Assembly: GCF_000143415.4 (NCBI RefSeq)
Contig: NW_003314322.1
Location: 207,691-271,690, forward strand
Length of the DNA stretch: 64,000 nt
Reading direction: 5' to 3'
From: Selaginella moellendorffii
Taxonomy: Eukaryota; Plantae; Lycopodiophyta
Below the pieces are notes generated by a model. The model saw nothing but the letters and a program-made list of their open reading frames with translations. It did not search any database and was not told the origin of the DNA. Each line of letters starts with the position of its first letter. Within the stretch, counting starts at the first letter, position 1. The position numbers and the translations under genes are program-made. Positions 7,554 through 51,880 of the stretch are shown in pieces.

Positions 7554-9174
7554 AATAGTACTACACAATAGGAATAAAGCAGGTAGGTAGAGAACAAAAA
7601 CAAGTGCCCACACCTGGACATATTCTATAGCAAGGAAAAAAGCTATTTTGATTCACTAAGATCAAGGTACAGTTCAGTATAGTACTTTTTTCTTTTATAA
7701 GTACAGAATTTTTTAAACTCTTACAGATTCGAAAATTCATGGCCTCTATTGTGGCAAGAAACTGTGCTGTTGGGATCCAAGGCAGTCCTCCTACAAACAC
7801 CAGATAAAGTAATAATATCACAAATTATAAATACTAACCTGTAGCCAGCAACTTTAGTCACTACTTTATTTACTTTTAACTTTATAGTATATCTCTTATT
7901 GTGTGTACTATATACCATCTTTGTAAAACAGAATCATCAAACTCTTTATTTAAAGTTGCTATTTTGGCATCGGCGTCACATATTCCATTTTTCGAATATC
8001 CATTTTTACTTATGGCAGATGCTCTCAATTCAACGATCCAGATTTGTGACACTCCAAAGCAATGGTGCGGATTGTTACATGGTGGCAAAGAGCTTGGTTT
8101 TAGGTTTAAGAAACAGTTAATATGGCTGTCCGTATCTGGAGCATATTGGATGCTAAAATTTTATTGTGGGAGAAGAAGCGCATCGGATGAGAAGTAGAAC
8201 TTTCCCGTCCCATATACTGTACATCCAAGACCTCAAGAAGAAGGTGACATCAGAGGTGATTTTTGTTTCAGAATTTCTGGACGATACAGGTATTGCTCAG
8301 AAGAAAAAACAAATTTACTGCTTCTCTAGGTACTCTAACATTCAAGCGAATCCAGGGTGCCTTGCAGCATTTTTCCAGTCCAGTGAAGCTGATCAATGGC
8401 ATCGCAACAAAATCCAGTGAGTTTTGTTTTAGAAAAAAAAATGACTACCATCTTTGGATATGCCTGTACAGCTTGCTTTGTGTAGCTCTAGGAGATGTAG
8501 TCGAGGTTCTGGTTGGAATAGGTGGAGAGGCAAGAGCTCAGGCTGGGAAGCAACATCCTTGGAAGCTCTCCAAACAGGATCCGATTGATGCACATGTCTG
8601 CCTGGGTGGAGGTGCGCTCTCTGTTCCTCATTACCAGAGCTCACTGCCACAGATTCTGGAGAGTGCAAGAGACTGTTGGACTTCCAGGGAGTAGTTAGTG
8701 GAAAAGGTAGCTGACCTGTTTCATCACTTTGTTTCATTTCTGTGCTGCTGCAGAGTGACAACTTGCACACCAAGATAGAGGAGGATGAGAAAGAGAAGCT
8801 GTAGAAAAAGCAAGCCCACATCCCATCTCTGTGGCCATGTGTCTGAATCCATCTGTGCTGCAGGGAAGAGGAACGTCAGCTCCAGAAGAAGAAAAAGAGA
8901 TGAGCAAAAGGCCCTTCCTGTCTGTCATTTTTGGACGAGGTTGACAGTGACACTGATGAAAGGGAAATGACAGCGATGAAGGCGAAATTGACAGCGCTGG
9001 TATGGTTTGGCAGCTTCAATCAAATCCAGTAAAAGATGAGAGGTGGCAGATGAACAGAAAAATAAAAAAACTGGGCAAGTTTGGGATCTCACCAGTATGG
9101 GGAAGACTGGGTAATGCTTTGCGTGTTTGTGTTTTTTCCAACCATGCTGTTCGTGATTCCAGTGGAAGTTCTCG

Positions 9175-10965
9175 AAGGCCAACTTAATCTTTTGAGAGTC
9201 GAGCTAGGAGAAGTTCACTCACAAAGCTCTTGGGAGGAAAGAGGTGGATCAGATGCCATGGTAAACACGTAAACCTCCTATTTTCTTTCATTTTTTCCTT
9301 CAGGAATTCCATCTCTTGTTGCCAAGCCGCTGGGGTGTAGGGAATTAAAATGCCTGATTTGGTAAATTCATGAAGCCTTGTTCCGCTTTTCCTGACGAAC
9401 ACTGTAGGTACTCCAAAGGCCTCAGCTACGATTCTATACTGGACTGGGACAGCAACGCTGCTTCTTGATCTTCCTCACATTCGTTATTATTCTTCTCAGA
9501 ACTAGGTAGCCACAATTTTCACTAAAATCTAAAACAAGCACTGACTAAAGTCACGCAGATCCGAGTTCATTAAAAATCCTGGACCGCATAAGGTGCTGGT
9601 ATAGTAGCATAAAAAAAGTTTTTATGATGCTAATCAAAATCTCTCTCTTTTGCACTTCTTTTTAGGTGAAATTTATTCTTTTTTCTGACACAGAAGAGCG
9701 TGCATTTCCATTCAGAAGAGAAGCGGCCAAGAAGGACTCTGAGTTGATGTCTTTCGGATGTGTTTTGTGGAGGCAAGAGGAAGCTTCAATTTTGAAAAGC
9801 CGGTAGTTTTAGTGATAATCACGTGAATTGATTCATGCTTTTGCGTGTGGAGCAGGTTTGGATTAGAGTTGGCACCGGCAGTAGTTTTCATCAAAGATCC
9901 AGGTGTCCAGCCCATAACTGTTTATGGTAAAAATCTTCTTTTCGGCAGCTTTGAGATAATTTCTTTCACTTTGCGGGTAAATTGCAGGTAAATTGCGTGA
10001 CTCCTTCATGGAAACTGTGGAAGAACATAAAGTTCATGGTAAGTAGTATGTAGGCTCTTCCTCCTTTTGCTATCTTTTGAATTGCAATTTGATGTGCGTG
10101 CTTTTATTTCTTCCTCAGCTGCAAAGCATCACGGCTTCCAAACTTGGATGTGATCCCGCGGACTTCTCTGCAGCTGGAAAAGATGTAGAAACATGGTACT
10201 GCATTGTGGTTGCTGGAAGGCCTGGTTTTCAGCTTGATCAACTCTGCAGTGTAAGATTTTCTTTCTTGTTGTTTCTAGCTGACGAGTTTCTCATTTTAGA
10301 CGATGAGAATTGTGCAAGATGAGCTCATGTAAGTGAGGACATTGATAGCCAAAATTTTGCTGCTGCCACTGCATACAAAGACAAGCATTTGAGCCTATCA
10401 TGGCTTGACGGCGAAATGTAAAAGGTGGATACTTATATAGCTCGCTGGTTAATTAATCCTTGTTTTTGTGCAGAAATTTTGCTATTACTGCCTCCCTTCT
10501 GAACCCGTCCATGAGACTTGCAGGCCGTACCAAGTGCAAGACGTGGCAAGAATTTTGATGATACGTTTTAGAAGAGATCCAACATCAAAAGCCGGTGGTG
10601 AAGAGAATCAATACCTGGTGGCGTTTGAATTATGAGGAGCCAGATTTAGCATCAATGCTTATTGCTCCATACAGTGATGCAAATGAAATCTCAGAGGTTG
10701 GTTGGTTGGTTTCATTTAGACTTTTTTCTCTTTTCTTTGTTATACCAAAGAGTTTTTCTGCAGGTTTTATCGTGAATTTCTAATAGTGTTCATGATGGCG
10801 ACACAAATGAAATTCCATTCTTTGTAAGTGTTGTGGTGTTTTGAAAGTTTGGAGAACTCTTGACTGTGGGATTTTGTTAGAATACTAAGTCGATGCCTGC
10901 GTTAATACCCGAGGAGCAAGCAGTCTTGATGCTCTCTTCAACACGGAATGCTGTGAGGGAATGAG
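9175..10965 (+). pseudogene. Captured multi-exon fragment of DnaJ/thioredoxin-like protein (plant DNAJC16 / At1g18700 type)
   Basis: Exons GIPSLVAKPLGCRELKCL, LELAPAVVFIKDPGVQP, LSLSWLDGEM, CYYCL, LIAPYSDANEISE with short GT-AG introns; stops and frameshifts. Confidence 0.7.
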
Positions 10966-11714
10966 GAGATTTATAAATAAAAGTTTGTTTAGAAATTACA
11001 GATTGTGCATGTTATTAGCTTCTATGCACTATTTGGCAGAACAAAAAGGGAACACTACATTTAATAGAGTATGCATGACTGTAAGCTTTTAATTTTGTTG
11101 ATGTTTCTTGTAAAAAAAATTATAAATTGAGCTAAAGGACAAAAGAAAATGTAATTCAAAATAAAGATATTACATAAACAATAAAAAATTAAAAAAATAT
11201 TTTAGAAGAAACTAAATTTTCTTTTCAGGATAAGAGCTTCAAATAGACTTGTTACATAGTTAGAGAAATTTTTCTTAGAGTTCATATTAACTTTCTTTCT
11301 AAGCATTATTGGTTGTACAAAACTTTTGGTTCCATACTAGAGGGATGGCTGGCTGGATCCCTCCTGGGTTGAGAGGGAACAAGGCCCCATAGTACTAGCA
11401 ATCACAACTTGAACAGATGTGTAGGAAGCTGGTATATCTATCACATGTAGCCATAAAGATTCGAAAACTACAACAACTTTTGCTTGAAGCACTTGAAAAG
11501 AATGTGGTAGACAGCAACAAACCTGTACAACGTCGTGAACAGCCGGATGTCTGCCGGAGTGAGCGAGTTGCCACACAAAAATCTCAAGCACTGAAGGTGT
11601 TTCTCAACAGTTTCGAGTTGTTCCCTGTATTATAGAATTAAAAATGAACAATTTTAGAATGGATTAGCAATGGGTTTAAAGAAGATAGCAGAAAAAGAGA
11701 TGCTAAGAGATAGC

Positions 11715-12460
11715 GAGCTCTTGATAAAGAAGAGATTGAGCTTGCAATCTTGATAAGCAGGATTGAACCACTTACACAGATATCCCAAGAAAACAAAAGT
11801 CGTGATGTAGCACACTAAGGACACAGCAAGCAAGGCATTATACCTGTGAAGTGTGCATCTTGTTCTATGTATAAAAGGTAAAGAAACGAGGAAGAACATT
11901 ACCAGAACTGACTCTCTTTGGCAATCCATGCAGCATTCCAGTTGTATGTTGAGAGTCTTCCTGCCAGAAGAACAAAGAAACTATGGTTATAAATCCAAGA
12001 GAAAAGCACTAGATTTACTGTCAGCATCCACAATGTCATTGGGAAGAAGGATGAGGCAAAGCACAGTGAGACCAGACCAGACGATAAGAGCTTGATCATT
12101 CAGTTGCCACGATGCCAAGAGTCCCTGTGATTGCTTTGGTACTTCCCAAAGCTCTCATGTGTAGAACAGCTTGTGTGCCAAACAAATCCTTGCCAGGCGA
12201 GTAAGGGAAGTGATTAATCCCTGGAAGCGAAAAAAAAGTAGGTGTTGTTGCAAATCACAAGAACTTACACGGGATTTTCTCACGTGAGGTCATGCAGCAT
12301 CCATGCGAGCAGCAAGGAGAGTGCGAAGAGGCTGCAATACCCGATTCTTGCCAATCGGCAAGAGATGCTGCTCACTAATCCCTCACAAGCCTGGCAAGCG
12401 TAAGCTGTGCAGCTGGACGCTAGACAAAATGTCGCCCACATCATCAGATGCTCGCTGGAT
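11715..12460 (-). pseudogene. Captured Serinc/TMS membrane protein fragment
   Basis: WNAAWIAKESQFW and YNALLAVSLVCYITTFVFLGYLCKWFNPAYQDCKLNLFFI match plant Serinc. Confidence 0.8.
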
Positions 12461-12904
12461 CAAGAAGCAAAACCTTAGAATTTGATTACATTGTCCCTCG
12501 CTTTAGATTTTTTTTTATAACACTAATGCCATGTTGTTCTGTTGTAGATTTTCTATCGTTACAGAACTGAAAGGCAGAGAGTTTATGGTTGCAGTATTCT
12601 TGCAGTGATCTGGGTGGGATAAAATCCTAAATTTTGTGTTGTATAGCTGTTTTACAGTTTTGGAGCCTATTGAAATATCCAGTGTTTGCTCGAAATTTCC
12701 CAGCGAGGAGCGCACTGGCAATGCAGCAGCTTTGTGCACTGGCGCTCTCAAGTTATCGTCACTGCAGCCACTGATATGAACGTGACTGGCCGCTCAATCG
12801 ATCAGATGCCATATCTGAGCGCCAATGCCATACCATTTTAAGGTTTCTATTTCCTCCAAGTTGTCCAGATAGCCAGCTGAGTAAATCCCAGGCTGTTCAC
12901 TGGG

Positions 12905-13890
12905 AATCCACAGCAGTGTGGCAGTCACTGCCTTCCTGACATTCTCGAGTTTTCTCAAAAAGTGGTACCATGAGACGGTGCTCAAGCCGGGACAGCCTCC
13001 ACTTCCACCGGGATCTTTGGCAACGTGGCTGCTTTTCTCAGAGGCTTCAAGTCTGGAAGACCGACTACATTGCAAAGTTGAGTGATCTTGTACTTTCTTT
13101 CGCTTGTTTAACTGTCGCTTTTTCTTGGTTTCAGGTATAATCGAGTTGGTTTTACAAGGCGTTTCTGTTCTGGCAGATGCAAATTTGTAAAGACAGCTTT
13201 GAGACAGGATGGCCGGAGAGCACTGTTGTGCTCATTGGACGAAATTTGTTTGCAGGGTTAACTGGAAAGAGCCACTTGAAGCTCCAAGCCCGCTGTGAAC
13301 AATCCCAAAGCTCTCAAGCAGTATGTGCCCCTCATCGTCAACAACATAAAAGCGTCCCTTGTGAGGTGGTCTACGCAGGATAAGATCGTTCTTCTTACCA
13401 GTAAGCAATTGTCTTAGTTTTCTTGTTGACACTGGTTTTTTCTGATATGACAGTTCACGTTTCTAACTGTCCTCTACATTTTATATGGGAAAGACTCCAG
13501 TCTCGACATGGAAGAGACTTTCTCCTTCTACTACATTGTCAACCAAGGCATTCAGGCTCTCCCCATCAACTTCCTCGGCACTGCCTACAACAAAGCCATA
13601 TGCGTTGTACATAGCTTTGTGACGTTTTCTCATTTTCAGGCCGAGGCAAAAGCTTATCAAGCTTATCCAGGACGTGATCAACCAATGCTTCTGGAAAGCC
13701 GCAGGAAACAAGCATTCTTTCATTGCTCATGGATCAGCCGGATGACAAAAAAGAGGTGCTGGAAGACGCTCATATCATAGACATGCTCAACATGTACATG
13801 AATGCTGGTCACGACTCAACGGCTCATGTCATCATGTGGCTGATGATTTCCTAAAGAAAAATCCATGATGTGCTTGAGAAAGTGAAGATA
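12905..13890 (+). pseudogene. KAO: Captured CYP88A-like (ent-kaurenoic acid oxidase) P450, N-terminus to I-helix
   Basis: KWYHETVLKPGQPPLPPGSL; DSFETGWPESTVVLIGRNLF; NQGIQALPINFLGTAYNKA; IIDMLNMYMNAGHDSTAH; no heme-binding region; frameshifted. Confidence 0.8.
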
Positions 13891-16255
13891 GACATTTCCA
13901 ATTTCATACAAACTTTCCTTCATACAAAATTTCTTCTTTAGGCCACATCCAGACTATTCTGTAAGAGTTTCAAAACTTCTGTAATTAAAAAAGAAAAAAG
14001 TATTCTACTGAATTGTACCTCATACAAGATGATACACTATGTATTCTCATGCCTCCACTGTTCTAATTCATCTCTGTCGCTTCTGTATTTCGAAGGAAAC
14101 ACTATTTATAAAAACTCTACATTTATGGTTACCCTTTTTTCCAATGGACCTAATGACGACATGTTCAAGATAGAGACAAACTGGTAGGTATTCTTAAAGA
14201 ACCATAGAACTGAACACCATCTCTTTAAGGGCAATCTATGAGGCGCTTGTGAGGCTCTGAAGTGTTAACCTCCTCTGGATATCTTTCAATAACGAGAAAA
14301 AACCTTTAACCTATGAAAGGTACTTTTTCACTGCTTCTTTCATGTTTTATGGAGTCAAGTTACAGCTTCTGGAATTCTATGAGCAGCATCTGAGGAATGT
14401 CTAGGGAATGAGAAATAGTAAGGTGTAGTATGATATTTTCTTGTTCTAATAAATAGTTAAATAGGAGTACATTGTACTGCCTGTTGTAGCCTTTGTGGCT
14501 TTGCTTGACTACAAAATAATGCTTACAAAGTCAGAATGACACAAGTAGAGATTTCATAAAAAAAAGTCAGTCTCTTGCCACTTCACTCTCAAACAATGAA
14601 AGCAAATAATGAATCACCCAAGACAAAATGTGGAAGAAGAATAGAATTGGATTCAGCACCTTTGCGAATACCCAGACAGACACATATCCTTGCAAGAGGA
14701 AGAGATCTAACATCAGTTGCATTGCCTGACACTAGATTCAGGAGCTTCCTTAGAATGGCTTGTGGTGGCAGGGAGCATAGAAACATGAATTCAGGCCACA
14801 AAGGTCACCATTTCAATCTTATTATCAAAGGGTCCTTAACAAATGTGTTACAATCCACTGCTACAAAAACTAACATCGTAAATTCGTGCAAATAATGGTA
14901 TCCTAAGATCACAATCTCCTATTTCAATAGTCCAAGCTAACACATTATTGCAAATGAGAAAAGATGAGACCTTGTAGTAAGTAGAAAAATAAAAAGCTGA
15001 TAGTTGGCCTAAAGAAGGATTTTAGAGAAAAAAACATATAATGGATTTGGCATTTGAAGCAAGAAAGAATAAGGAAGGTTGCTAATCTTATGAAAAACAT
15101 AGTAGTATTTATATTGGAAAGTAATTTGTTTTCTGCTATTTAGAGAAATCTTTGGTGATGTAGATATTCCAAACATGCAATTCTTATGAATATCTCAAAA
15201 ATATCATTATTTTTTTAGAAAACACTACTCTTGAAGACTTAAGAAACTACAAGAAAAAGCTTTGTTAGCTTCTTCTTGGATATGAAAGAAAAACTTGAGC
15301 TACCTTCTGCAGTTCCATAAGCTAAGGAGTCCTTGCTGGTACATCCAAGCACATGAAGTTCCTTGGGTGTTAAGTCTTATCAAGTGGTGGGCTATTCAAT
15401 GAGCATGGTAAAAATTAAAAATAGGTTGAGAAAAAGGAGAAACAACATGTCTTACAAATAGCAGATAGATTTTAAAAAAAAAGTTAGAATTTATGCTAGG
15501 GTCCTCCCATGATTAATTTAAATGATGATATTAAAAAATATCACAATAATCCAGATAAATTCAAATAATACAGCTTTTTAATTATTGATAATGTAGATAC
15601 TGAATAGTTCTATTACTAATGCAGTAATATTAATGGCATGCATTGGAAATTGGGATTAGAGCAGTAATAAAAATGGAATTTTGTCACACATAATGACATC
15701 TTAACACTTCTATGACAATATAGATTTACTTCTTCTGGTAAGCAAAGAAAATCCATTATATCATTCACCATTATAGTGTTCAGAAAATGGTAATAATATC
15801 AATAATAAGCACTATTTTATTATAACATGATAATAATAAAACAAAATGATCACATTATATATATAGCTTATCTTTTCTAAAACTTGCATTTTTTATCTAT
15901 TTGCATTATTGTGCATTTATTTAGAGGTGAAGAGTAGCAAAATTAAGATAAATTTAACTTTGTATACAATCAAAATTTCTAACATTGTAAAATTAGAAAA
16001 GAAGATGTATTTATCTTAGGTATACTATATCTCCCAGCAGAGCTGGGGTCTCTGCTAGTACTCATATATTTAAACGAAAGAGCCCGTATAATAATAGCAT
16101 ATACTGGGGACACTTATTCTGGGCATATGCCAAAATCTAACAGTTGAGATTAAACAATGTAAAGTCGTGACTTTTGGGATCATAAAAAATTTCAAATGTC
16201 TTTTAGGGCGCGTGACCACGAGGAGAGAGCATCGATCATCGCTAGCGGGAAGGTA

Positions 16256-16258
<3 letters not shown>

Positions 16259-16329
<71 letters not shown>

Positions 16330-16360
16330 CTCTGTGTGTGCCTCTGTGAGTGTGTGTGCG
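16259..16360 (+). repeat. (TC)n-(TG)n microsatellite about 200 bp inside a Helitron 5' end
   Basis: Seen directly; equivalent tracts at about 21780-21830, 31377-31426 and 44220-44268. Confidence 0.95.
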
Positions 16361-16544
16361 TGTTTGATGGCACGATTTAGAAGGCTACAGTCAGCTCCGG
16401 TTGGTTCATTCTCGAGTTCTAAAGCTCATGCGGCGGAAAATGACAATCATTTAACCGACGCTGAAGCATTCTTCAACAGGAGAATTATCCAGTTCGTGAA
16501 GAAACGAGTCGCACTTATGGAAAAAGTACTCAACGCAGAATATC

Positions 16545-18250
16545 ATCTGGTAAAAGAGTCTCGACCCCCCTATCATCGTCCCTGTGATTCTAACTTGAGA
16601 TGTTCCAGGATGACCAAGATATTCCGGCCAATCGCAGTAACAGTGGCATCAAGCCTGGCGAGGGACCAAAAACCTCCTACCAAAAGCCGCAACCCACATT
16701 TGTTCTTTATCCAACACCTTTGAGTGAGTTCCTTCGATTTAGACACTAGAAAAAACTCTAACGCGTTCGTTTTTGGACAGCTCCGGAAGAAGTCCTGGGA
16801 ACAGCACTGGATAACGATCCTAAGCGGCTGAAAGCTCCAGCCTATTACAATGAGGTTGTGTTTGTTTCTCCATTTGCAAAGGTTTGAGAGGCTCACGGCT
16901 TTCTCTGTGTCGCCATAGTTGTGCTCGATGATCAGCGAGAACAGGCTCGACGCCTTCCAGACTTATGCGGGAACAAATCCACCAGCATCTGCCTGCGCAG
17001 GTGCATTCGGCAGATCGACGTGCTCTGCTCGGAAATGCGACGAGGATTGAGTGAAAGGCGAAGAGGCTATGGTGGATGGAGCTCACGACAGGGACGACGT
17101 CTTGGACAACGAGGGGATTCACGTTGTCATCGACGACTAGAATCAAGGTTCTTCACTCTCTTGCTCGTCACTATTCTTCTTTCGGGTCTCTCAAGTCCCT
17201 GTTTGTTCCAGGTTCTCAAGGCCGGAACCACGACTAGAATCAAGGTTTTTCACTCTCTTGCTCTTCGCTATTCTCTTTTGAGGCTTAAAGTTCCTGTTTG
17301 TTCCAGGTGCTCGAGGCTGGAACCAAGAGAAAAAATAGAAATTTTCGTCCACGGTTCGCTTCCTTGTTCTTCAGTTTTGCGTTTTTAAAGAATTGAGAGG
17401 GATTTCTATTTTGCAGCGCTATAAACCCCGTAGTCTCTACATGGATAGTCATACAGGACAGCCATACATGGTGCTCTTCAGTTTATGACAAGTTCTCTTG
17501 AGGAAGTGTTGGCAGTCAAGTGCAAAAAAACTGGCTTGGAGGACATGATGGAATACTCTCTTATAACAGTTATGGCTGTTCATATCTGAGGGTTTCATGT
17601 CTAACTCTCTCTCGTGTCACTTTGCAGCATTAGGAACGAAACAAGGAGAGCGAGCTTCTTGATTCTTCACTGTTGATAAGTTTCTTTCTCGCATTTTTTG
17701 CAGTTGTCACTGTTTCTGAGTCTCCAGAATGAATGCTTTGGAAATGGGTATGTATGTGATTTACAGTGTTTGCAACGTAAGTTGAATGTGTTTGCAAAAG
17801 AACAGGTCATGAGTACTGGGAAGATGAAGGCATTGAAGAGAAAAAGCCAGCATGCAGGCAAATGATGAACAAACATATTTCACCCATATGATCCTGTCGC
17901 TTACAGGTATCAATATACTGCTGTGTTAGCAGTGTTTACATTTATCCTTTCGTCTTGATTACAGAGTGGAACCTCTGATATCTATTCTTTTTGGAGAAAG
18001 TCAATGAATATCTTGGGATACAGGTAAACATAGTGCTTTGTAAGTTTTGCTATCAAAGCTAGAGGAAGTTCTTCGGTTGGGGTATGGTTTTGTCACAGCT
18101 TTTTACGGCAGTATGGTGACAGAAAGGCTATCTAGAAGTCCCAATGGTAGAGTCGACTTAATGCTACAGGTAAGTCTTGCTCTTTGCTATCATCATACTC
18201 GTGTGGATCCAGGATACAAAATTTAAGCACCACTACATATCGCTATCTGA
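16545..18250 (+). pseudogene. SGR2: Captured SGR2-like DDHD phospholipase A1 fragment
   Basis: EYWEDEGIEEKKPACRQMM..IFHPYDPVAYR|VEPL and PNGRVDLMLQ|DTKF match the DDHD domain; assignment of 16545-17700 is weaker. Confidence 0.7.
17134..17325 (+). repeat. Tandem duplication of an exon-intron-exon unit (97 bp period)
   Basis: cgactagaatcaag|gt...ccag|gt..ggaacca starts at 17134 and 17231. Confidence 0.9.
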
Positions 18251-18934
18251 TCAATGACAGCAGTGGCTGGAGAGAGAGAGGAGATTTGGAGTCGGAATCA
18301 CAGCAGTAGCAGCAGCAGCATCACCAGTGAGAAGATCTCAAGGCCATGAGAATCCTCCACCAGTTTGGGATCAGTCACATGTACATAGCAGCCAGGTGAG
18401 AAGGGCAGTGTGAGGACGAAGATCTCACAAGGGACAGGGATGAAGATCTTATAGGGTCCGTCATCACCCACGAGCAGCAGAGATTGATGAGGTCCTGGTT
18501 TGCTCTATCACTTTGGAGCCATCTCTGAATGGCAAGGTGAGCTTCAAAGTGGTGGCAGTGATCCAGAGCAGCAGCTCTAGAAGTGGTAATGATGACCATG
18601 CGTTTCTCTACAGGGACACGGTGCTGTACAAATCCAATTACTATTAGCATCACATGTCTGAGGACAAATTAAGTGAAGTGGTGCCAGATTCAATTGTATT
18701 TGTGTTGTAATACTACATTATATATAAGGTGTCTCCTACCCTTGACTGGCTACAAAAAATAGCAAATGTCTTTCCCTCTTTGCTCTAAGTGAGCACTTTG
18801 ACCAACACACATAACAGTAACATATGTGTCGAGAAGGCCAAGTACAAGCCCACTGCTCAGTTCAAGCTCAAAGTCACCTTGCTTCTCTACATTTATATCA
18901 ACAGCTCCTCTACATAATCAGGCTGTGTACTCCA

Positions 18935-19190
18935 CATGAACCATGGAGCCTATAGTTGGCCTGTCGCAAGATGTCTCTTCTCCTCTGGTATTCCTGTTGA
19001 AGTACTAAGCAACAAGTAAGCAATACAAAGCTTACACCATATCACTCACGGTCACTTTCGCAAAAGCTTACTTAAATTCCACGCTTGCGCAGACTCAGAA
19101 TCATGTAAATATGAGCGCACACTCGCAGTTATGCTCGCTGTCCCAATACAGAATTTTCCTCCTCTTTAGTGCTACTGATATCAGCACATG
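18935..19190 (-). pseudogene. Second copy of the MRL1-associated segment (paralog of about 6897-7137)
   Basis: Nucleotide similarity, e.g. aaccatggagcctatag...gctactgatatcag in both. Confidence 0.75.
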
Positions 19191-21777: not shown

Positions 21778-21832
<55 letters not shown>

Positions 21833-24080: not shown

Positions 24081-24180
24081 AATATAAATTGATACCAGAG
24101 CATTGATGAGCATCCTGCAGCTCAGCCAGAACTTTTTTTTTGTCAAGGATATTTCACCTTATGATATGTTTAACTTTGCA

Positions 24181-39414: not shown

Positions 39415-40454
39415 NNNNNNNNNNNNNNNNNNNNNNNNNNNNNNNNNNNNNNNNNNNNNNNNNNNNNNNNNNNNNNNNNNNNNNNNNNNNNNNNNNNNNN
39501 NNNNNNNNNNNNNNNNNNNNNNNNNNNNNNNNNNNNNNNNNNNNNNNNNNNNNNNNNNNNNNNNNNNNNNNNNNNNNNNNNNNNNNNNNNNNNNNNNNNN
39601 NNNNNNNNNNNNNNNNNNNNNNNNNNNNNNNNNNNNNNNNNNNNNNNNNNNNNNNNNNNNNNNNNNNNNNNNNNNNNNNNNNNNNNNNNNNNNNNNNNNN
39701 NNNNNNNNNNNNNNNNNNNNNNNNNNNNNNNNNNNNNNNNNNNNGAGGGGGGGGTGAGGAGAAATTTCCAAGTGGGTGGAGCATGGAACCCCACCCTAAG
39801 GGAACTACTCCTTATTCACATGGGCATAAATTAAAAATGCCTTGAGATGGAAAATGCTTAGTAGTCTATTGCTCAACCCCAATGAGCTTATAGAAGGTGA
39901 TGAACCTGATCTAGAATGCCCAAATAATATACCAAATTGAGGAATATGATTAAGCCACCTCTTCATGTGTTGAATAATTCTTTTAAGCTTTGAGTCAAAG
40001 CTTGTATTATTCTATTCCAGTAAACCATTTAAGAAATAGTGTTTGGTTGCAATCACTAAGTAAAAATTAAATAAACCAAGTGCTTGTAACATATTGAACT
40101 TAAGCAAGTTTTAATAAATTATTCTCTTTGTAGAATTAGCATCTAACTATCCCAGCGGAGCTGGGTTCCCTGCTAGTCATCCTTCTATATCTAAAAGAGC
40201 AAGGGTGACATATTCAATCGAGATTCTTTTCAAGCTTAATGGTGGAGATGAAAACACATGGCAAAAAAACAGTTGAGGGTGAAACGTTTTTTTTTTTAGG
40301 GTAAACCAGTTTTTTCAATGCATTTTTCCAGGAGAGCTTATCACCGTGGTGCACACCATGAGGTTCGCTGCATGATTGCATTCGTCCTTACGTTATATAC
40401 CTTGTGCTCATGAATCTTTCCTTTACTGTCCAGTTTGTACTCAAAGATGCTGTC

Positions 40455-40960
40455 AAAGAGACCTCTGACTTCCCACAGCACTTGTGGAATCGTGAACAGA
40501 CTATCTGATCACAATAGTGTGCTGTCCAAAGGCTGCCAGGCGCTCAAGATTTCCACCCAGATCGACTTGAAAAGCATTCTACCATTCAGCCAGAGCACCT
40601 GTATAATACACTTGTAAGTCTGTGAAAGCAGTTTACTGGATCTCTGAAAGAGATGTCCTCTCTGCACCAAACAAGATAAGCCACTCTACGTTTACTTCAT
40701 TCTCCTGTATATCTGATAGCTCAGATCTCCATGGAACAGAACAGGCAGCTCCTCCCTGAAAGTCTTGATGGCATAGCCTACATTGACATGGTAATCCAGA
40801 CTTCCTTCCTTGCTCTTTGCTACTAACGGATCCTCTACTTTGCTATTCAGCTTGGTCGAGAGATTGCAATAATGCACTTGAAGAGGTTGCTTGAATCTAT
40901 CTCTGCTGCTATATGCCAAGCTCGGCACTACCTCTAACGGAAGCAGCTCACTACACACCA
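40455..40960 (-). pseudogene. Captured DUF2358 (SnoaL-like) fragment
   Basis: DYHVNVGYAIKTFREELPVLFHGDLSYQIYR matches the plant DUF2358 motif NMGYAIRTLREEFP. Confidence 0.75.
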
Positions 40961-41329
40961 TCTTGTCAAGTTCGCTGCAAACTGAATATTGTCTTCCTCA
41001 GTCAAGCTGATTTCTTCCAGTTCTTCATGCCAAACAATGGTATGGCACTCTTAAGTTTGAGGTAAAAAGCTTTCACATATTGTTTGTAGCCAAACTGAAT
41101 GCATTTTCATGTGCAATGGCTCAGTGACAACAAGCTGGATCCCATTCTAGAGTCACTGGCCAAGCTACCTTGGTTGACTTGCACAGGCTTAACCTCAGCA
41201 AGTCCATCTATCCACTGGCAAGTTCTCAGTGTTGAGAATAGCGAGCCAAGTGGCAGTGATTGAAGAGGTGAGTTTTCTATTTTTGATGCTTTTAGCTCCC
41301 CGGCAAACATCTGTATTCTCTTTTCTTCT

Positions 41330-42745
41330 TCTCTAGATTACTGACAACCTTGCTTGGAATGTATTACAGTCATACACATTGGAGATTAAGTTTCTTGAAG
41401 CTCTCTGATGCTTCAAACAAAAGGCAAGCACTGCCACTGTCAAGCATACATGACAATTGGCTTCAAGAAGATGATGGCTAGGTTTATGAGTTTTGCAGTT
41501 GTCAATTTTGCAACTGTTCTTGGCTCTTCTGTATCTGCCAAGTGAGTATTTCCGAGCTATGACTCGATTTCTGATGTTGAAGCATGTGAAGCTTTTATGC
41601 AGTTTTGGCCAGAGTCTAGAACAATGCACTGGATCTTTGCACGGAAACACAGGGAACATTCGAAATAACCCAGCACTTGAGGTGATATGCTCATTAACAT
41701 TTGTGATTTGTTTATCTCGAGGCATCTTTTCTTAGGCACTTCGAGCATTGACTTACACGGGAACTTTCATTGGTGGGGGCAATGATCCTAGCAAAGAATT
41801 CTCTGGAAGAAGCTTATATTATGAAGCAGATGATCTGTTTTCAGACCTCTTGAAAGATGAAAATGAAGGCTCAGCATTAACAAGAAGTGACTATATCGCT
41901 TTTAAGGTTACAAAGGTCCATCTTGCAGGAACATCATTGGTTGTATCCTGGAATGAAGGCTACGTTGGAAGCAGCAATGGGGTACATGCTCTAAAATTTA
42001 TCCCGCAGCTTTTGCAAGTCTATTTCGATGTTGCATTGCAAGATATGAGTGATTGTAAGTTCCAAACCTTTGCATTTAATCCGCTGCTCTTTGTATGTTT
42101 AGCACTACTCTGCACTCTTTTACCTATGGTCTTCTTCAGAATCAATGCCATGTTTCTGGATAAGGCATTCTCAATCGAGGTAAGCAAGATTAGTTTACTC
42201 ATAAGCTGACTCATGTCTTAAATCAGGTCCAACAAACGTGTTGTCAGTTTGTGCACACTTTCTTCAAGAAATCTCCTCAATTCATTGCTCTTTTGAAGGT
42301 AAGCCTTTCTTATCTATTTGAAGTTGTTATCCCAAAAGAAGTAAAAACATTGCAGAAGCTCATCACCAGTCAACCTCAAACAAGTGACAGTAAAGTAAGA
42401 TGGATTTCACAATGTTTGAGTGTTAAACTTCTATTACATTTACTAGACTGAGCTTCCTTTGCAACTGTGCTGAGTGGTTGGAGACCATGGGGGTGGTGGT
42501 ACTTGTTTCAAGGATGGTGTAAGAGAGCTCTTTGAAACTCTGGAGTTGGTTCTCTACAAAAACCTCTTCTTATGGTAATCGAAGTTTCTCACTGTTTATG
42601 TTGTGTCTAATCGTCACAAACATCCAGGCATAAAACTTCTGCCATCCCGGCCCAGTCCCAGCTGCTATTTTTTGTCATAACCGCCATAGCAAAGCTTGCA
42701 ACGTGCCATCAAGAGCTCTTGCCTAGAGCTCGAGTGCTAAGGTTT
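41330..42745 (+). pseudogene. AP5Z1: Captured AP-5 complex zeta subunit fragment (multi-exon)
   Basis: WVVGDHGGGGTCFKDGVRELFETLELVLYKNL and LLFFVITAIAKLATCHQELLPRAR; 5' boundary uncertain. Confidence 0.7.
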
Positions 42746-43147
42746 GTTTTTTGTTTTTTTTGTCTTCTCTAAGGAACTTTCTTGAGTTTAAGTTGCTGTT
42801 CCTGATGAAGGTGGCACAATCACATCAACTACTCAAAAAGACTGTCTGGAGAAGAATTGAAGATCACCATTGCTGCCTACGACGGAGTCCCTGGAGTGGA
42901 GAAGCTGGTGATGAATGCAAAGATGGACCTTGCCTTGCAGCTTATACAGCATGAGAAGCCCGAGAGCTTGCTACATTACTACAAGGCCATGGAGCTGTCC
43001 ACAAAGTTCAATTTGTTTCTCACATGTCCAAGAAGGCTTGGCCCCCCAATAATCGCTGGGGAGGCTAATGTTGACCTTATAAAGGGATCCTATGAGATCA
43101 AGAAGAATTTCTTCAAAAGTTGAGAATTGAGCTAAGAAATTCCATAC

Positions 43148-43225
43148 ATGCAAGTAAACCCAGAAGAAAAAGAATGGTCAAGATGGCTTGTGAGCCAAGG
43201 AAATGGCAATCTCCCTAACCAAGGT
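43148..43225 (+). pseudogene. Remnant of Helitron Pif1 helicase
   Basis: MQVNPEEKEWSRWLVSQGNGNLP versus MRVNSEEKEWSRWLVKLGNGNLP in ORF 63650-63964. Confidence 0.85.
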
Positions 43226-44217
43226 TTAACCAAGTTTACATTGCCGAGTTCACACCCCATTGATCAAAGAAGTATATGTATGAATTTATATATGATATAT
43301 GTATCTGTAGTTGATTCCCCAGATAAATCCCTGCACCACGACCCAGTGATCATACAAAGATAGAAGCTGGCCAACTGTATATGGCTTTAGAGTTGGTAGC
43401 AGCATGCTCAAGGCTGGATGGTTGCTGGTGAATTCTTGCAGACTTCCACCTAGCATGCTAGGTAACTGTAGAGCAGCAAAAAAAGAACATTCAGGAACTT
43501 ACTTTGTGAGGAGTCAAATAATCCGGAACACCTTCCACTCGAAGTTCCTCGAGGATCTGAAGAAAGAAACATTTAGACCATGAAAGAATACAAGAGATTC
43601 CTTACTGACCCTGCCATCTTGCAAGTTATACATAAAAGATTTTGATTAGAATCCTTTCTATAATTTTAAATTTCTGTAATAACTTCCTATACAGTGATAG
43701 TAATTGCAATATGGGATATGAGAGACCATCTGCTTATATTACTTTTGTTACCAATAAAAGAAAGGGTATATACAAAGACAATGTTCCATTGTCATAAAAA
43801 GTATTTGTGGATATTGATGATCTCCAAGGTATAACTATCAATCTCTACACTAAAATGACATTATGAATTTCAGACAAACAATTTGAAAAATATACATCAT
43901 CACTACTGGATAATGAAAACAAACAACTAATTCTTTAGGATTCATGTCACCTATGTAACAGATGTCCTATCTATTCCAGCGGAGCTGGATTCCTTGCTAG
44001 TACTCCCTTATTTAAATGTGCTATTGGCATATGGCATCCGGCATATTTTATTCCATTTTTAGAATATTATTTCTGAATATACTTATAATCTAACGGTTCA
44101 AATTCAAAAACTTTAAATAGATGGCATAGATCAAGTGCCAAAGGGGTGGCAACTCTTCAATTTCTTAATGACGATCCAAATCAAGAGAAAAAATTTAGGG
44201 CAATTGGGCAGATTGTG

Positions 44218-44268
<51 letters not shown>

Positions 44269-44524
44269 CGCGCTGAAATTTTCTATTTGCTGTGTTTGAT
44301 CGGACTGGCTGGGGACTGACGAGCCGGCCGTGCAAAAAAAATGGCCGTGACAAAGATGGTCTTCCCAATCCTTACGAGCACCAGTCCCAAGTGAGTGTTC
44401 TATTCATTGTCGTTTAGAAAGAAAAAAAAAGAAATTTTTTCCTGTTGTTCTTGCTTGTTTGATTTCTCTGATTAGAGCTCGCAGGTGGATTTGCTGCTGA
44501 GCTTTTGCCAGCAACTAAAATTCT

Positions 44525-44857
44525 CATCGGTCGTGCTCGTTGGTCATGATGACAGTGGATTGCTTGCTCTTATGGCAGCTGCCAATATCTTGACAACTCT
44601 AAGCCCAACGCAGGTAAGCTGCAAGCCACTATAGTTGGATCATCGCATGGATTTTCATTTCTGTGGTGAAGGTGGTGATCAAAGGTGTGGTTTAGATCGC
44701 GGTGAGCTCCTCCAGATATCGCCATTTGCTCGAGTTTTGCTCCACACTTCTTTGGGATGGCACATACTCCGGCCATTGCTGTGCCCGGAGATGGTGAGTG
44801 GCCATGCCTGACATGATGCTTCGAAGCTCACCTCCAAAGTGATGGAACTTTACAAGG
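44525..44857 (+). pseudogene. Captured alpha/beta hydrolase fragment (GHDDGG type)
   Basis: VVLVGHDDSGLLALMAA and PFARVLLHTSLGWHILRPLL..KLTSKVMELYK. Confidence 0.8.
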
Positions 44858-44944
44858 TATGAGGAAAAATTCAAACTTGATCAAAAGAAATCCATGATTT
44901 TCCGTGTATACATAGGTATCTTGTCTATCTTGTTGTGATGTCTA

Positions 44945-45496
44945 GGCCATTTTCTTCTCACTAACTGGCTACTGGAAAAAATGAAGGAGACCGCTAAGGA
45001 AAGTGTTTGTCAATCTCTCCTGCATCGTGCATATCGCCTCTTACAGCGGTGGAATCCAGTTCTCACACATTAATGACAAAACCTGGTACACCAAACAACT
45101 CTCTTTTCTCGTGAGCTTACATTCTTCCTTTTTTCTTCCAAAAGGTACTCCGACACTAGAGCATACAGTCAATCCAAGCTCGCAAACTTTTTCCACGCCA
45201 AAGAACTGGCAATAAGATTCAAGGTATTCGTCTAATGCTTTGAAATCTCTCCCACCTTTCTCTTTCGCCAATGCTTTCTCTTTTGCTGATTAGGCCGAAG
45301 GAGTTGACATCACAGCCAATGCTGTTCATCAAGGGTTTATAATGACACCTTTGATGGCAACAAGATTCAAGGTATTCGTCTAATGCTTTGAAATCTCTCC
45401 CACCTTTCTCTTTCGTCAATGCTTTCTCTTTCGCTGATTAGGCCGAAGGAGTTGACATCACAGCCACATCTAGGGTTTATAATGACACCTTTGATG
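44945..45496 (+). pseudogene. Second TIC32-like SDR fragment with internal tandem duplication
   Basis: GHFLLTNWLLEKMKETAKES, VNLSCIVHIASYSGGIQFSHINDK, AYSQSKLAN; paralog of 24346-24585. Confidence 0.85.
45207..45496 (+). repeat. Tandem duplication of an SDR intron-exon unit (148 bp period)
   Basis: tggcaa.aagattcaag|gtattcg...acctttgatg starts at 45207 and 45355. Confidence 0.9.
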
Positions 45497-46664
45497 CGGT
45501 ACATTGAAGAGTAAATTGATAAAAGGTGGGCTTAATTTAGCAACCTATGAGAACTATTTAAGTTCGTTGCTTTGTTGTTCTAGGTAGAGATGGCTAGGGC
45601 TAAGCAGACGATCAGGAGGACTCCACCACAGTACCTTTTTCTTAACAAACAAATCGCAAATGTTCGGGTTCGCTCAATTTAAGCAGCTGGAGGTGAAAAC
45701 CACAAGCTCTCAACACTGCCATTAGGTACTTGTTGACCTGAATGTAGACCTGAAGCCCCGCCTGGGACAAGCTCTGTAATGAGTGGAAAGTAAGCTCAAG
45801 ACGTTATAGCAGCAGCTCTCATATACCAGCCAGCTGTAGCACACATGCAGCCAATAGCAAGCACGCCAAACAACTTTACAAAAATGATCTCTTTGATCCA
45901 ATCAGGTGACCACCAACAAGGGAAAGAGAAACTGCAAAACAAAGAAAAGGAGATAGGCAATAAAAACACACAGCAGACAGACACACCTTCATTCAGGTAT
46001 ACTTTCCCTTTCCCTTTTTCACTATGCTGTTGCAAAATTGAAATAACAAGAGCTCAGCTCAATCACTAAAAGCTTAACTGATGGATGAAAGCTGACTCAC
46101 CCTTGTTTTACCTGACAGGTACACTATAGTGCCATTTTTGTTTTGTTGTGTGGATCAACTGCTAAGGCATTCTTAAGGGGGCAGAGGATGATTATTCAGT
46201 GAGCGTGAGACAGATGAGCAAGAAAAACGCAAGCGCCTTCACAAGCATTAGATCCAAGAGCAGACACACCAAAAAAAATATTCTCTGGCATTTACATTAT
46301 CTGGAGATGAGGTCAGACACACACCTACAGCTTACCTCCTGCATTTGCAAAAGTCCCATTGGAAATGGCGACAAGAAATGTGTCAAATAGCACAAGAGAA
46401 CTATACAGCTAACTTCCAAAACACTCATTCATTCATATGTAGGCCTTTGATTTTCAGGTAAATCGGAAATAGATGTTTTCAAAAATGAGAGATGAAAACA
46501 AGAATAGATAGATAGAAAGAAAGAAAGAAAGAAAGAAAAAAACAAACCAAGTTTTGAAAAGCTGTGTCTTTAAAGCTTCCACTCCTTTTAAAGAAATACA
46601 CACTCAAATATATCAAAACATTCTCCCAATTTTACAAAACACTTCAAAAACTTAACTGCCACCT

Positions 46665-47240
46665 TTTGCAAGCATTATATATGAAAAAAGATCCTTGTTA
46701 CAACCACCAAACTCCTGTGCTGTCTGCAAGGCAGTGCTTAGATCCCAGTACATTTGACAAGCTCCCAGCAGACTCTCTCACTCCTCTTGCCCAGCATCCC
46801 CTTGGAATCCTTCAGCTTCCCGGCCCTTGCAAACACATGCTGCTGAAGCGATCTGCAGTGAGATTCAAGCCATGGTTGCAGACTCCAAGTACTGCCACAC
46901 GTTCATGAAAGTGATCTCCTCCTATTTCAAGGCCATGGCATGGAAGAGCTCTAGAGCTTCCCATCCTTGTCTAGAGAGCAAAGCCCACCACCATGGAGTT
47001 TCACATCATTTACATGGGCCTCTTGTACTTTGCCTGCTCAAGCTTGCCATCGTGCCATCATAGAGAGCCATGATACTGAGTTTTTTCCCAGCCATCTTGC
47101 CAAAAGAGATCCACCCTCTGTAATCTTTTATCCCGGGCTATCATATCGGTATGACTCTGTAATCTTTTATCCCCAAGCGCAATGATTCTGCCCCAAATGA
47201 AGAAATGATTGACAGAAAAAGCTGTGGTAAAACTCTTTAC
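46665..47240 (-). pseudogene. PLS/E-class PPR fragment
   Basis: GWEALELFHAM..EEITFMNV; ESLLGACQMYWD; SYIML (E-domain like). Confidence 0.65.
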
Positions 47241-47590
47241 TGTCAAAGAGTGTACCTAAATAGATACGTAGGCTAAGAAAAACTGTTTCGAATCATAGAA
47301 AAAAGGACTGCACAATTAGGTTGCTTTCGCATTTGTCAAGAGGTAATTTTGTTTCTATGTTTCCTGAGCTTTGTTTTTCCCGGCTTTGTAATGTTGTTCT
47401 GCTCCAAAATATAGGGACCCCCAAGCATCATATTAAGGAGCTGTGCCTCTGCCAGCACTTTGTTTCAGTGTGCTTCTATTTTCTTGTGGTTTGGCTATTA
47501 GTCTATTTACTTATTTTCACCATCTAGAGCCTGCACACGCTGTCTAAGGTTCTATTTTCTAAAAGAGATTGTAAAATCTCCTACAGATCA

Positions 47591-50500
47591 ATGGGTGGCA
47601 AAAGAAAGAGGAAAACATGTGATCTAATTTTACATGAAGGCTGTATAATAAAAAAAAGTTCAACAAGTTTGAATTCATTTCTATATATGAATAGAAGCAT
47701 GGATGTAAGTGTGAGAAATCTGGTATCCTTTGAAGAACCCCCAATAATTCCAAGATTGATACCCATAGAAAAGACTTTTAGAAACACTGTTGAAATTATT
47801 ACCCTACCTGTTAATGAAGTAAATTTTGGAAATGGATCCAAAAGCATGGAAAACACTAAACATTTAGGACTCTTGCAAAACAACATAGATGGTAAATGTA
47901 AAGTAGATTATATTGGACTCATGGATAAGCATTGTGACTATTGTAAAGCTTTTCTTTTTGCTTCAGAAACACAATCACAATGTTGTCATGGTGGACGTGT
48001 GTCTAGAGAAAAACAAATTGAGTTCCCTCAACTGATTCGTAAATTATTAGATGGAACAGACCAACAAGGAAAATTCAAAGAATTAATTCGAAATTATAAC
48101 AGTGCTTTGGCATTTGCATCTATGGGGGCAAATATTGATGAAATGATTGGCAATGGACCATATTATTTCAAAATTCATGGACAAGTATACCATTCAATTG
48201 GCAGTTTCCGTCCTAAGCAAGGTCATGATGCAAAATATTCTCAACTTTATATTTTAGACACACTAGAAGCTACAGAAACAAGAATGAAAAGTAAATATAA
48301 CAGTAAATGTGATACAGGACTGATGAATGAATTAGATGCTTTATTACGAGAACTTAATCCATATGCAAAGGCATTTAAAATGCTACAAGATGTGGAAGAT
48401 GAGCTTCATATGACAAATTCAAATATAAATAATGGACTACATAATATTGTAGTGTATATAAATGGTGAAAACACAATAGATCCAAGAACATATAATGCAC
48501 CAAATTCAAATGAAGTTGCTGCAGTGTTTACAAACCCTACTGGGGAGCCTCTATTTAACCGTAGTATTGCAATACATCTGAAAGGTGAAAGTATGCAAGA
48601 GATATCAATTGTGACATCATGTTGTGATCCTATGGTATATCCACTGCTTTTTCCAAATGGAAATGAAGGCTGGTCACCAGATTTAAAATACACAGACAAG
48701 GGTTTGTCTTTAAAAAGAACTAAGATAACAATGATGGAGTATTATCGCTACAAGTTTGCTATTCGTGGTTTGATAAGAGATAGTTTTAAGATTATTGAAT
48801 TTAATTCAGGTTTAATGGGTGGAAAATTCTCCCAACAATACATGGTTGACATGTACACTAAAGTAGAGGGTGGTCGTCTCGATTGGATAAAAAACCATCA
48901 ACGTGAATTAAGAGCTAAAGCATACGGAGGTCTTTCTGATTTTGTTATTAAGAGAGTAAAACAACAAGGGATACGTGCTGGAAAACTTGTGATTTTGCCA
49001 TCAGGATTTATCGGTGGACCGAGAAATATGAATCAAAATTATCAAGATGCTATGAGCTTAGTATGAAAATATGGAAAACCTGATTTATTTATTACAATGA
49101 CGTGTAACCCAAAATGGTAAGAGATAACAAAGAATTTATTACCAGGACAAAGTTCTTCAGACAGACCAGATTTGGTAGCACATGTTTTCCATGCTAAAAA
49201 ACAAAATCTTATAGATGACATATACAAAGAAGAAATATTTGGAAAAGTTAATGCATATATGTATGTTATTGAGTACCAAAAACAAGGACTACCACATTGT
49301 CATCTACTTGTAATTCTTAAAAATGAGAATAAAATCAAAACCGTAGATGATGTAGACAACATTGTTAGTGCAGAAATACCAGACCCAAACAGTGATCCTA
49401 AATTGTATGAACTTGTGAAAAAACATATGATACATGGTTCATGTGGTCCTAGATTTCCTGAAAGTCCATGTTACAAAAAAGGTGAATGTAAATCTCGATA
49501 TCCATGAGATTACTGTGAAGAGACAAAAAATATTAGTGGCCAATTCCCAAAGTATAAAAGACATTATGATAGTCATAAAATCTACATTAAAAATAATGAA
49601 ATTGACAATAGGTTTGTATAGTAAGTATCTTTTGTGTAAATATAAAACTCATGTTAATGTAGAGGTTTGCTTAATTGTGAAAAGTGTGAAATATATTTTT
49701 AAATACATATATAAAGGTCATGATTGTGCAAAGATACACTTTTACAAAGAAGGAAACACAGAGATAGAGAATATTCTTGATTGGAATGAAATAAATGCAT
49801 TCAGAAATCGCCATTATGTATCAGCTACTAAAGGAATGTGGAGGTTATTTGGATATGATTTACATGGGAGATCACATTCAATTGAAAGATTAAATGTGCA
49901 CTTACCAAATTTGCAAAGTGTTTACTTCAATGAGGGTGAAGAAGAAATTGCATTAGAGAAAGGTCATAGAACAAAACTTACTCAATGGTTTGAATTGAAT
50001 AAAAGAGATGAATTTGCAAGAACATTGACATATTCAGAAATTCTGGAATGGTATATTTGGAATGCAAAAACTAAAACATGGGTAAAAAGACAACAAGGTT
50101 GGAAAGTTATAGGTAGAAGGTACACTGTACCACTGAAAGATAGTGAACGATTTTATATATGATTATTATTGTTGTATAATAAAGGTGCAACAAGTTTTAA
50201 ACATTTACGTAATTGGAAAAACATACAATATGATAGTTATCGAGAAGTTGCACAAACGATGGGATTATTACAAATGACCAAGAATGGGATAGATGTCTAG
50301 AGAGTCTCTCACATTTCAAATGCCTTCTAAAATTAGATATTTATTTGGAATAGTGTGTCTCGTTTGTGAGGTTAATGATCCTAAAAAATTATGGAATAAA
50401 TACAAGGTAGATATATGTGAGGATTTAATATGTAAATACAATGATGAGGATGTAGCATATGCACATGCACTTCAAGAGTTGTCTCTTTTACTAGAACAAC

Positions 50501-51880
50501 ATGGGAAATGCCTTTCAAATTATGATATTACTATACCATGTACTACATATCTAGAAAATAATAAAGAAAGAGCTAACATGTATGAGAATGAAATGTTTGA
50601 ATACCAAGATATTGAAAGAAACAAATCGTTACTGAATAAAAATCAGCAACATGTCTTTGACAAAGTATGTAAAGCATTGGATGATAAAAATGAACCACAA
50701 ATATTTTTTATTGATGGTGTAGGAGGAACAGGAAAATCATTTCTATTCAATATATTAATAACACATTCACGAGCACTTGGAAGAAAGACTTTGTCTGTAA
50801 TATGGACAGGAATTGCAAGCACACTATTAATTGGTGGTTGCACAGTACATTCTACATTTAAACTAACTGTACCAGTCACTGAAACATGTACATCTAATTT
50901 AAGGGAAAATTCAAAGGAGGCTGATGAAATTAGAAAAACAGACTTACTAATTTGGGACGAAATAAGTATGGTTCCAGTACATGTATTTAATGCTGTAGAA
51001 TGTGTAATACGTGACATTAAAGGTTGTTCTGATAAATTTGGTAGTATAACTGTTGTAACTGGCAGTGATTTTAGACAAACACTACCTGTGCTTAAAAGAG
51101 CATAATAGATTCAAATTGTACAAAATAGTGTTAAGTTCAATTTTATATGGTCATTTGTAGTGAAATATACACTTACAGAAAATATGTGTGTTAACAAAGA
51201 TGAAAAGGAGTGGTCAGAATGGTTAATTAGACTCGGAAATGGTAATTTACCAAGACTTGATGGATATGAAGATGATATAGTAGAACTACCAAAAAAATGT
51301 ACAACCAAGAATTCCATGATAAATGCTGTGTTCGGTCAAAAAGTATTACCTTCTATAAGTAACTCACAAAAAGCAATCTTAATGACATTGAATGATCATT
51401 CATTAGATATAAATGAACAAGTTTTAACAAGGATGTCAGGAAGACTGTTTTCTTTTAAAAGTGTGGATACAATTGATAGTGATTCCTTTGAAGAAATATT
51501 GGACTACCCAGTAGAATATCTTAACTCCATAACACCATCTGGGATGCCTCCGCATAACTTAAATATAAAAATTGGAAGCATTGTGATGTTTCTACGAAAT
51601 CTTGATGTAAAAAAGGGTTTATGTAATGGTACTAAATTAATAATTACATCAGCGTTACAAAATGTAATAGAAGCAAAAATATTACATGGAGATAGAGAAG
51701 GAAAAAAGGTCTTACTACCAAGAATCATACTAAAACCTACAGATGGTGACATGCCATTTGTATTAAAAAGACGACAATTTCCTTTGAGACTTGCATTCTC
51801 AATTACAATATGCAAATCTCAGGGCCAAACTTTAAATACTGTCGGAATCTTATTACCATGTCCTATTTTAGGACATGGGC
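47591..51880 (+). pseudogene. RepHel: Helitron RepHel (HUH endonuclease plus Pif1 SF1B helicase), disrupted
   Basis: Zn-finger-like CDYC..CCHGG; FITMTCNPKW; HUH YVIEYQKQGLPHCHLL; Y2 KYIFKYIYKG; Walker A GVGGTGKS; IWDEISMV; DFRQTLPV; TICKSQGQT; split over ORFs 47591-49066, 49172-49507, 49434-50162, 50293-51105 and 51160-51927. Confidence 0.97.

Follow-up and report, generated by a model that had tools for sequence, protein, structure and literature searches.

A head-to-tail stack of six Helitrons in Selaginella moellendorffii and its possible origin by serial insertion at resident 5' ends

Helitrons are present in a spacer-free, head-to-tail stack in the lycophyte Selaginella moellendorffii, within a window of 64,000 nucleotides (contig NW_003314322.1, positions 207,691 to 271,690), the whole stretch of DNA analysed here. 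The stack occupies window positions 7934-51880 on the plus strand and comprises six units of 8.1, 5.5, 9.6, 9.0, 3.8 and 7.9 kb, all in the same orientation. Each unit starts with a 5' leader of one of four types (A to D), and four types of 3' end (V, unit-2, unit-4 and unit-5) are found. For comparison we used loci L001-L011 of assembly GCA_000143415.2, which were reached through gene models of the unit-5 cargo and further single-exon models. The layout is as follows (coordinates of the window, strand, feature; a bar marks a junction or an insertion step):

7853-7933, no strand assigned: left flank, an AT-rich repeated fragment whose last base is A; its paralogues go on A|TTAT(G/C)TTTAATTTT (L003 21775-21861; window 26879-26920)
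7934-16058, plus: unit 1, a non-autonomous Helitron with leader D (TCAAACTC) and a V-type 3' end
16059-21560, plus: unit 2, leader C without its first TCA; inverted N-terminal fragment of RepHel, the Rep-helicase protein of Helitrons, at 20246-20540
21561-31151, plus: unit 3, leader A without TCA; peroxidase, aldehyde dehydrogenase and other gene fragments; gap 28950-29102
31155-40176, plus: unit 4, leader A, own TCA present; at 38720-38950 a Harbinger-type DDE fragment; gaps at 32641, 33514 and 39415
40177-44000, plus: unit 5, a multicopy non-autonomous Helitron with leader B (TCATCCTTC)
44001-51880, plus: unit 6, leader A without TCA, cargo and then a broken RepHel gene, which long terminal repeat (LTR) retrotransposon DNA cuts at 51881
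47591-51880, plus: RepHel remnant of unit 6, with Pfam domains Helitron_like_N, PIF1 and Pif1_2B, the Rep motifs FITMTCNP, HCHLL and YIFKY, and several stops and frameshifts

The units meet without any spacer. CTAG ends are found at 16058, 21560, 31151, 40176 and 44000, each 8 nt past the hairpin motif CCAGCnnAGCTGG, which has 19 strand-matches in the window against 0.59 expected. Taking as intact a 3' end that finishes in CTAG, all five intact plus-strand 3' ends of the span abut a Helitron 5' tip:

16034-16058, plus: junction 1, hairpin and CTAG, onto leader C at +3
21536-21560, plus: junction 2, hairpin and CTAG of unit-2 type, onto leader A at +3
31127-31151, plus: junction 3, hairpin and CTAG of V type, outside a TCA stub
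40152-40176, plus: junction 4, hairpin and CTAG of unit-4 type, onto the native tip of leader B
43976-44000, plus: junction 5, hairpin and CTAG of unit-5 type, onto leader A at +3

An earlier note on this DNA, made from its letters, had described 3' ends that run straight into 5' ends at these same places, and this description holds for all five. Its two limits of the stack are also confirmed. The leftmost end reads A|TCATCAAACTC at 7934, and on the right RepHel homology extends up to 51880, an LTR-like piece opening with TG at 51881; in the L005 paralogue the gene is uninterrupted. An LTR boundary near 51859, considered as a candidate, is ruled out by this paralogue, which puts the boundary at 51880/51881. 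The 3' end of unit 6 is not inside the window, and a search to the right of that unit found no sequence continuing the left flank. Just outside the span, the ends at 3173 (plus) and 62896 (minus) are not joined to a tip. We found no notable secondary structure in the tips. The note had also spoken of six different Helitrons. This is correct in that any two units have only 0-20% of their sequence in common, and direct neighbours 0-15%. On the other hand, since unit 3 also holds three decayed internal 3' ends (an antisense CTAT at 24056, one at about 27177 with the hairpin deleted, and a CTAT at 28870), the units are mosaics, and six is the number of intact, junction-bounded blocks.

The four features of canonical Helitrons (HLE1) considered here are found. 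The 5' TC is seen in leader B, which reads A|TCATCC at three loci, and in leader D, and is placed by alignment in leaders A and C. The 3' CTRR, preceded at about 10 nt by a short hairpin, occurs at the five ends as CCAGCnnAGCTGG, 8 nt and CTAG. All 18 tabulated CTAG ends have T as the next base, and empty-site paralogues at L008 and L005 show A|T, in keeping with insertion at an A|T step without target-site duplication. Finally, a RepHel with HUH/Y2 Rep and PIF1 helicase, as expected of the autonomous partner, is represented by the broken gene of unit 6, in which Rep motifs and PIF1 domains are visible.

Measured from CTAG to the anchor TATTTAAA, the junctions of the window fall into three registers of 16, 19 and 22 nt, and not into the two classes that the earlier note had derived from a native 5' end A|TCATCA|TACTCCC with steps at +0 and +6. 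Nor did that native end stand up: solo copies and a gap-free alignment give a native tip TCATACTC with one TCA. At three loci whose flanks are unrelated, leader B begins A|TCATCCTTCTATATTTAAA. If the tip has one TCA, 19 nt of leaders A, B and C can be aligned gap-free, and by this alignment leaders A and C would also carry a single one. We considered a start of unit 5 at TCCTTC as well, which is ruled out by L004-L006, where A|TCATCCTTC is seen. Because the native tip has one TCA, the preferred site is +3 and not +6. Six junctions (16058, 21560, 44000 and those of L003, L005 and L011), involving leaders A, B and C, share the 16-nt register, which lies 3 nt inside the tip. Judged from the sequence, the TACTC junctions are insertions at TCA|T, the junction at 40176 uses a native tip, and at 31152 TCATCATACTC consists of a native tip and a single displaced stub.

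Insertion at +3 leaves the TCA of the resident upstream of the newcomer. Two such trinucleotides stand in the stack:

7934-7936, plus: extra TCA before the tip of unit 1, preferably read as the displaced stub of unit 2, otherwise as flank (paralogues A-TTA-T)
31152-31154, plus: extra TCA, best read, from the stub count, as the displaced tip of unit 6

Five TCA are present in the whole stack. A model with one TCA per tip needs six and the +6 model needs 11, which, together with the solo leader-B tips and the gap-free alignment, rules out the +0/+6 geometry. For units 4-6 the count is exact (three needed, three present). Displaced tips are recorded most directly at L008: a run of TCA stubs 21 nt long (TCATCATCATCATACTCATCA) separates the flanking A from a leader-B tip, whereas two empty paralogues have A|TTAG. 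Within this tract, TACTCA matches leader C as far as the next A|T step of that leader. Hence, the displaced tip pieces that the earlier note had proposed to look for upstream of inserted copies do exist, as the stub stack of L008, the single TCA at 31152 and probably that at 7934. The allele of the solo element of L006 was not collinear at that site.

Loci L001-L011 also show how often 3' ends land on tips. Three Selaginella moellendorffii gene models match a cargo frame of unit 5 at 65-88%, and the loci were picked by their cargo genes, not by junctions. Of the 11 classifiable intact CTAG ends that they contain, five sit on a 5' tip, one lies in antisense orientation within a leader, at about 83 nt, and the other five are in unrelated DNA. 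Five on-tip ends out of 11 correspond to P of about 8e-12 if ends fell at random on local A|T steps (5e-7 with the leader used for picking the loci left out), and to 1e-7 or less if all insertions used TCA|T. Targeting is therefore a strong bias and not a rule. The earlier note had named a majority of 3' ends followed by unique DNA as a finding that would refute self-targeting; at these loci, about half of the ends lie in unrelated DNA.

Moreover, the partners at the junctions are exchangeable. V-type ends are found with leaders A, B, C and D, unit-2-type ends with A and B, and unit-4-type ends with A, B and C; in contigs of two 2024 data sets, unit-4-type ends are joined directly to leader A as CTAG|TCATCATACTCCC and CTAG|TACTCATCATACTCCC. 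Since 3' ends and leaders, of four types each, combine freely, the array is neither a single amplified unit nor a simple concatemer. Recurrence of the same composite junction as an amplified unit, which had been raised as a possible objection, was not seen: the same 3' types meet other leaders elsewhere, unit 1 has a 97-98.6% copy in L005 with another flank and another neighbour, and a complete solo copy of unit 5 with unrelated flanks lies in L004. One further contig (joint 40177-44011) reads CTAG TAAGGGAG TTTAAATG, a leader-A tip with CTCCCTTA inverted.

Two unit-5-type ends lie antisense in leaders, at different A|T steps: one at L003 20670-20754 (about 83 nt in) and one in the window, left of the stack:

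3149-3238, plus: unit-5 copy outside the stack, whose 3' end at 3173 is antisense about 65 nt inside a minus-strand leader; this leader follows a decayed V-type end

As they sit inside leaders at different positions, end-to-end joining is excluded for these two ends. At 3238, a deletion between short TCTTT-like repeats has removed the head-to-tail junction upstream. In L005, a unit-1 copy without its last 350 bp (1532-8519, minus) stands immediately upstream of a leader-B element, and between the two lies a duplicate of 53 bp of the upstream flank; this looks like an aborted tip insertion repaired via template switching.

Taking these data together, we think it reasonably probable that RepHel treats a resident 5' end like that of the donor, exposes a single strand and joins the newcomer at nearby A|T steps. 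The stack would then have been built by successive, separate transpositions with RepHel supplied in trans. RepHel would recognise, on a resident Helitron, the 5' terminal sequence that these elements share and open it, and joining would take place chiefly at TCA|T (+3), in other cases at the native boundary (+0) and sometimes tens of bases inward, in either orientation. As a +3 insertion leaves the resident TCA upstream of the newcomer, stubs would gather at the left, and growth of the stack would be leftward, beginning with unit 6. In order, unit 5 would have entered unit 6 at +3, unit 4 would have gone in between the stub and unit 5, and unit 3 outside the stub. The chemistry needed is available, since the Helraiser transposase cuts in vitro its own left end at A|TC, together with an internal AT of the other strand (PMC4778049), and forms and recuts precise CTAG|TC joints (PMC4778049, PMC5876387). 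Self-targeting to existing 5' ends, as the earlier note had put it, is thus sustained by the independent loci (five of 11), the free pairing and the L008 stubs; its +6 geometry is not, and the targeting is a strong bias. A stricter rule is plausible but somewhat doubtful. It states that RepHel reuses the replication origin of related residents as a safe harbour, at a fixed +3 across families, so that stacks are heterogeneous and one-way, residents lose their native tip, and (TCA)n is a record of insertion order.

Several observations weigh against serial insertion into resident tips. Unit-5-type ends are mostly off tips (one of eight assembled ends on a tip, compared with four of four V-type ends), and nine more in public contigs lead into diverse unrelated DNA; targeting strength may differ between families. 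No solo leader-A or leader-C element was seen, and no allelic empty site of this stack was obtained. Units 1-3 are one stub short, or two if 7934-7936 is flank; one read-through composite (units 2 and 3) or one lost or slipped repeat would cover the missing TCA. In addition, L001-L011 form a small set rich in Helitrons, so that the on-tip fraction is rough.

Other explanations have to be weighed against these data. In one of them, ends were joined to ends, either in rolling-circle concatemers or when CTAG|TC circles, nicked at variable A|T steps, recombined into chromosomal copies, with later cargo exchange and read-through composites. Precise CTAG|TC circle junctions have been shown experimentally, and tandem arrays in plants and bats have been ascribed to rolling-circle replication (PMC4778049, PMC5876387). 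The single orientation of the six units fits this view, the missing TCA fits at least one composite move, and the internal decayed ends resemble maize elements with multiple termini (PMC3288121). However, concatemers of one element should yield neighbours that are copies or truncations of each other, joined as CTAG onto the native tip. As the earlier note had argued, such a simple concatemer does not suffice here, given that direct neighbours share so little sequence and differ at both ends, with different 3' types meeting different leaders. Moreover, three of the five junctions lie 3 nt inside the tip and one lies 3 nt outside. Circles, in turn, fail to explain the TCA stack of L008 with its empty paralogues or the antisense insertions inside leaders. 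We therefore regard end joining as unlikely. An assembly artefact, in which repeats were fused across gaps via shared terminal sequence, deserves very little credence. It is true that the span contains four gaps, all inside units 3 and 4, that no read set bridges the stack and that three gaps are unverified. For the gap at 33514, paralogues in unit 1 and L005 are collinear, and no bridging sequence was found for those at 28950, 32641 and 39415 in public data, which consist of short contigs only, nor an inverted-repeat pair to bridge the one at 39415. No public contig spans the stack, and none of those listed bridges the junctions at 40176 or 44000. Thus, the continuity of the full 44 kb is not proven. 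The junctions, by contrast, are independent of the gaps, because none falls in a gap, the distance between junction and gap ranges from 432 to 12892 bp, and the gap-free contigs 7934-28949 and 39745-64000 hold two junctions each. Furthermore, junctions of the same class occur on other scaffolds and in contigs of the two 2024 data sets, and the 3' ends and leaders have no overlap able to cause a false join.

A different view accepts serial insertion but dispenses with recognition of the 5' end. Here, the newcomers would have been drawn by the TCA|T motif with its AT-rich downstream DNA, by open chromatin at promoter-like leaders or by local hopping, or would have survived because they lay away from genes. 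Helitrons indeed favour AT-rich DNA 3' of the insertion site (PMC4778049), the leaders are AT-rich, and insertion near other Helitrons has been reported (PMC12477314). The antisense insertions at about +65 and +83 likewise point to a zone and not to a single point. Nevertheless, tips make up only about 0.6-1.3% of the local TCA|T sites, a share against which five on-tip ends of 11 are the strong excess given above, and the flanks of non-stacked tips end in TTA, ATA, TAA or GCA, not in TCA. Selection, for its part, does not produce base precision. Like end joining, this explanation seems improbable to us, and serial insertion guided by the resident tips remains the reading that we favour.

Tandem Helitrons, clustering and self-insertion near 5' ends are already known from maize, bat and Fusarium. 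With canonical Helitron1/HLE1 elements such as Helraiser and wheat Xuan-Feng, the units of the stack share the 5' TC, the hairpin with CTAG, A|T insertion without duplication, a RepHel with Rep and PIF1, and captured gene fragments. They differ in their targets: for de novo insertions of these two elements, the parts of the reports available to us describe a preference for AT only and no tip targeting (PMC4778049, PMC13286980). Rolling-circle tandem arrays of plants and bats have the same head-to-tail CTAG|T junctions in one orientation, but are ascribed to concatemers of one element, whereas here different elements adjoin, most junctions fall 3 nt within the tip, and there are displaced TCA stubs. 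A further precedent is FoHeli of Fusarium oxysporum, a Helitron2-like element that inserts at or near the 5' ends of its own copies; one FoHeli4 lies 2 bp from another, and three tandem copies were found in Metarhizium (PMC5148889). Its multiple 5' termini were explained as self-insertion followed by nicking at the outer tip (PMC5148889). FoHeli thus also inserts beside or within another copy's 5' end, but it is non-canonical, the cases are few, its duplicated termini span 31-85 nt, and a fixed register, cross-family stacks and trinucleotide stubs are missing (PMC5148889). Maize Helitrons insert near other Helitrons, are nested and have internal pseudo-3' ends in CTAT (PMC3288121; Yang and Bennetzen 2009, as cited in PMC12477314); these are regional clustering and internal nesting, in contrast to zero-spacer targeting of the first bases. 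A specific, orientation-fixing target has been proposed for the telomere-inserting Helitrons of Paramecium, although in that case it is the telomeric repeat and not the element's own 5' end (PMC13085455). Cross-family, base-precise +3 targeting with a record of TCA stubs was not found in the literature searched, which left out key subscription papers.

How Helitrons choose a target beyond the AT step is not known, and head-to-tail junctions are usually taken as proof of rolling-circle concatemers. If insertion into resident tips is correct, such junctions have a second origin and target choice is tied to origin recognition. It would also open a simple route to large multi-cargo composites in plants, namely read-through over a zero-spacer junction, supply a source of TCA microsatellites and explain how a small, gene-dense genome tolerates many Helitrons.

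Several features of the RepHel genes and of the surrounding DNA were also noted. The best database relatives of the unit-6 RepHel are Helitrons of arachnids, nematodes, crustaceans and Hydra (about 36-53% identity), ahead of those of flowering plants (about 29-37%), so that, on protein similarity, an animal-like Helitron lineage may be present in this lycophyte. The protein searches returned no Selaginella RepHel, and exact look-ups of 16 open reading frames of the window gave none on record. The 3' part of a second RepHel Helitron lies at 62896-64000 (minus) and is about 76% identical to unit 6 in DNA; L008 holds a 96% copy, from which the CTAG has been lost. The 3' terminus of this second family is about 90% like that of unit 5, which suggests that it mobilises unit 5. 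At window positions 1-2412, a unit-5 copy with an internal repeat (194-636, 1851-2292) lies beside an unsized gap of 100 N. A segment present in this copy and in the solo L004 copy is absent from unit 5 of the stack, which is therefore an internally deleted form. In L005 (about 17117-17141, minus), a large deletion in a unit-6-like RepHel is closed by telomere-like filler TAGGGTTTAGGATTTAGGGTTTAGGG. To the right of the stack, at 54815-57031, a minus-strand Ty3/Gypsy reverse transcriptase is abutted by a 5'-truncated leader A with 2 kb of cargo resembling that of unit 1 (90% to 8895-10968). Finally, the leaders at 16134-16154, 21644-21664 and 44084-44104, with the next 200 bp, contain the promoter-like motifs TCTAACGGT and TTTAGGG, which may resemble MSA and telo-box elements, followed by long CT repeats.

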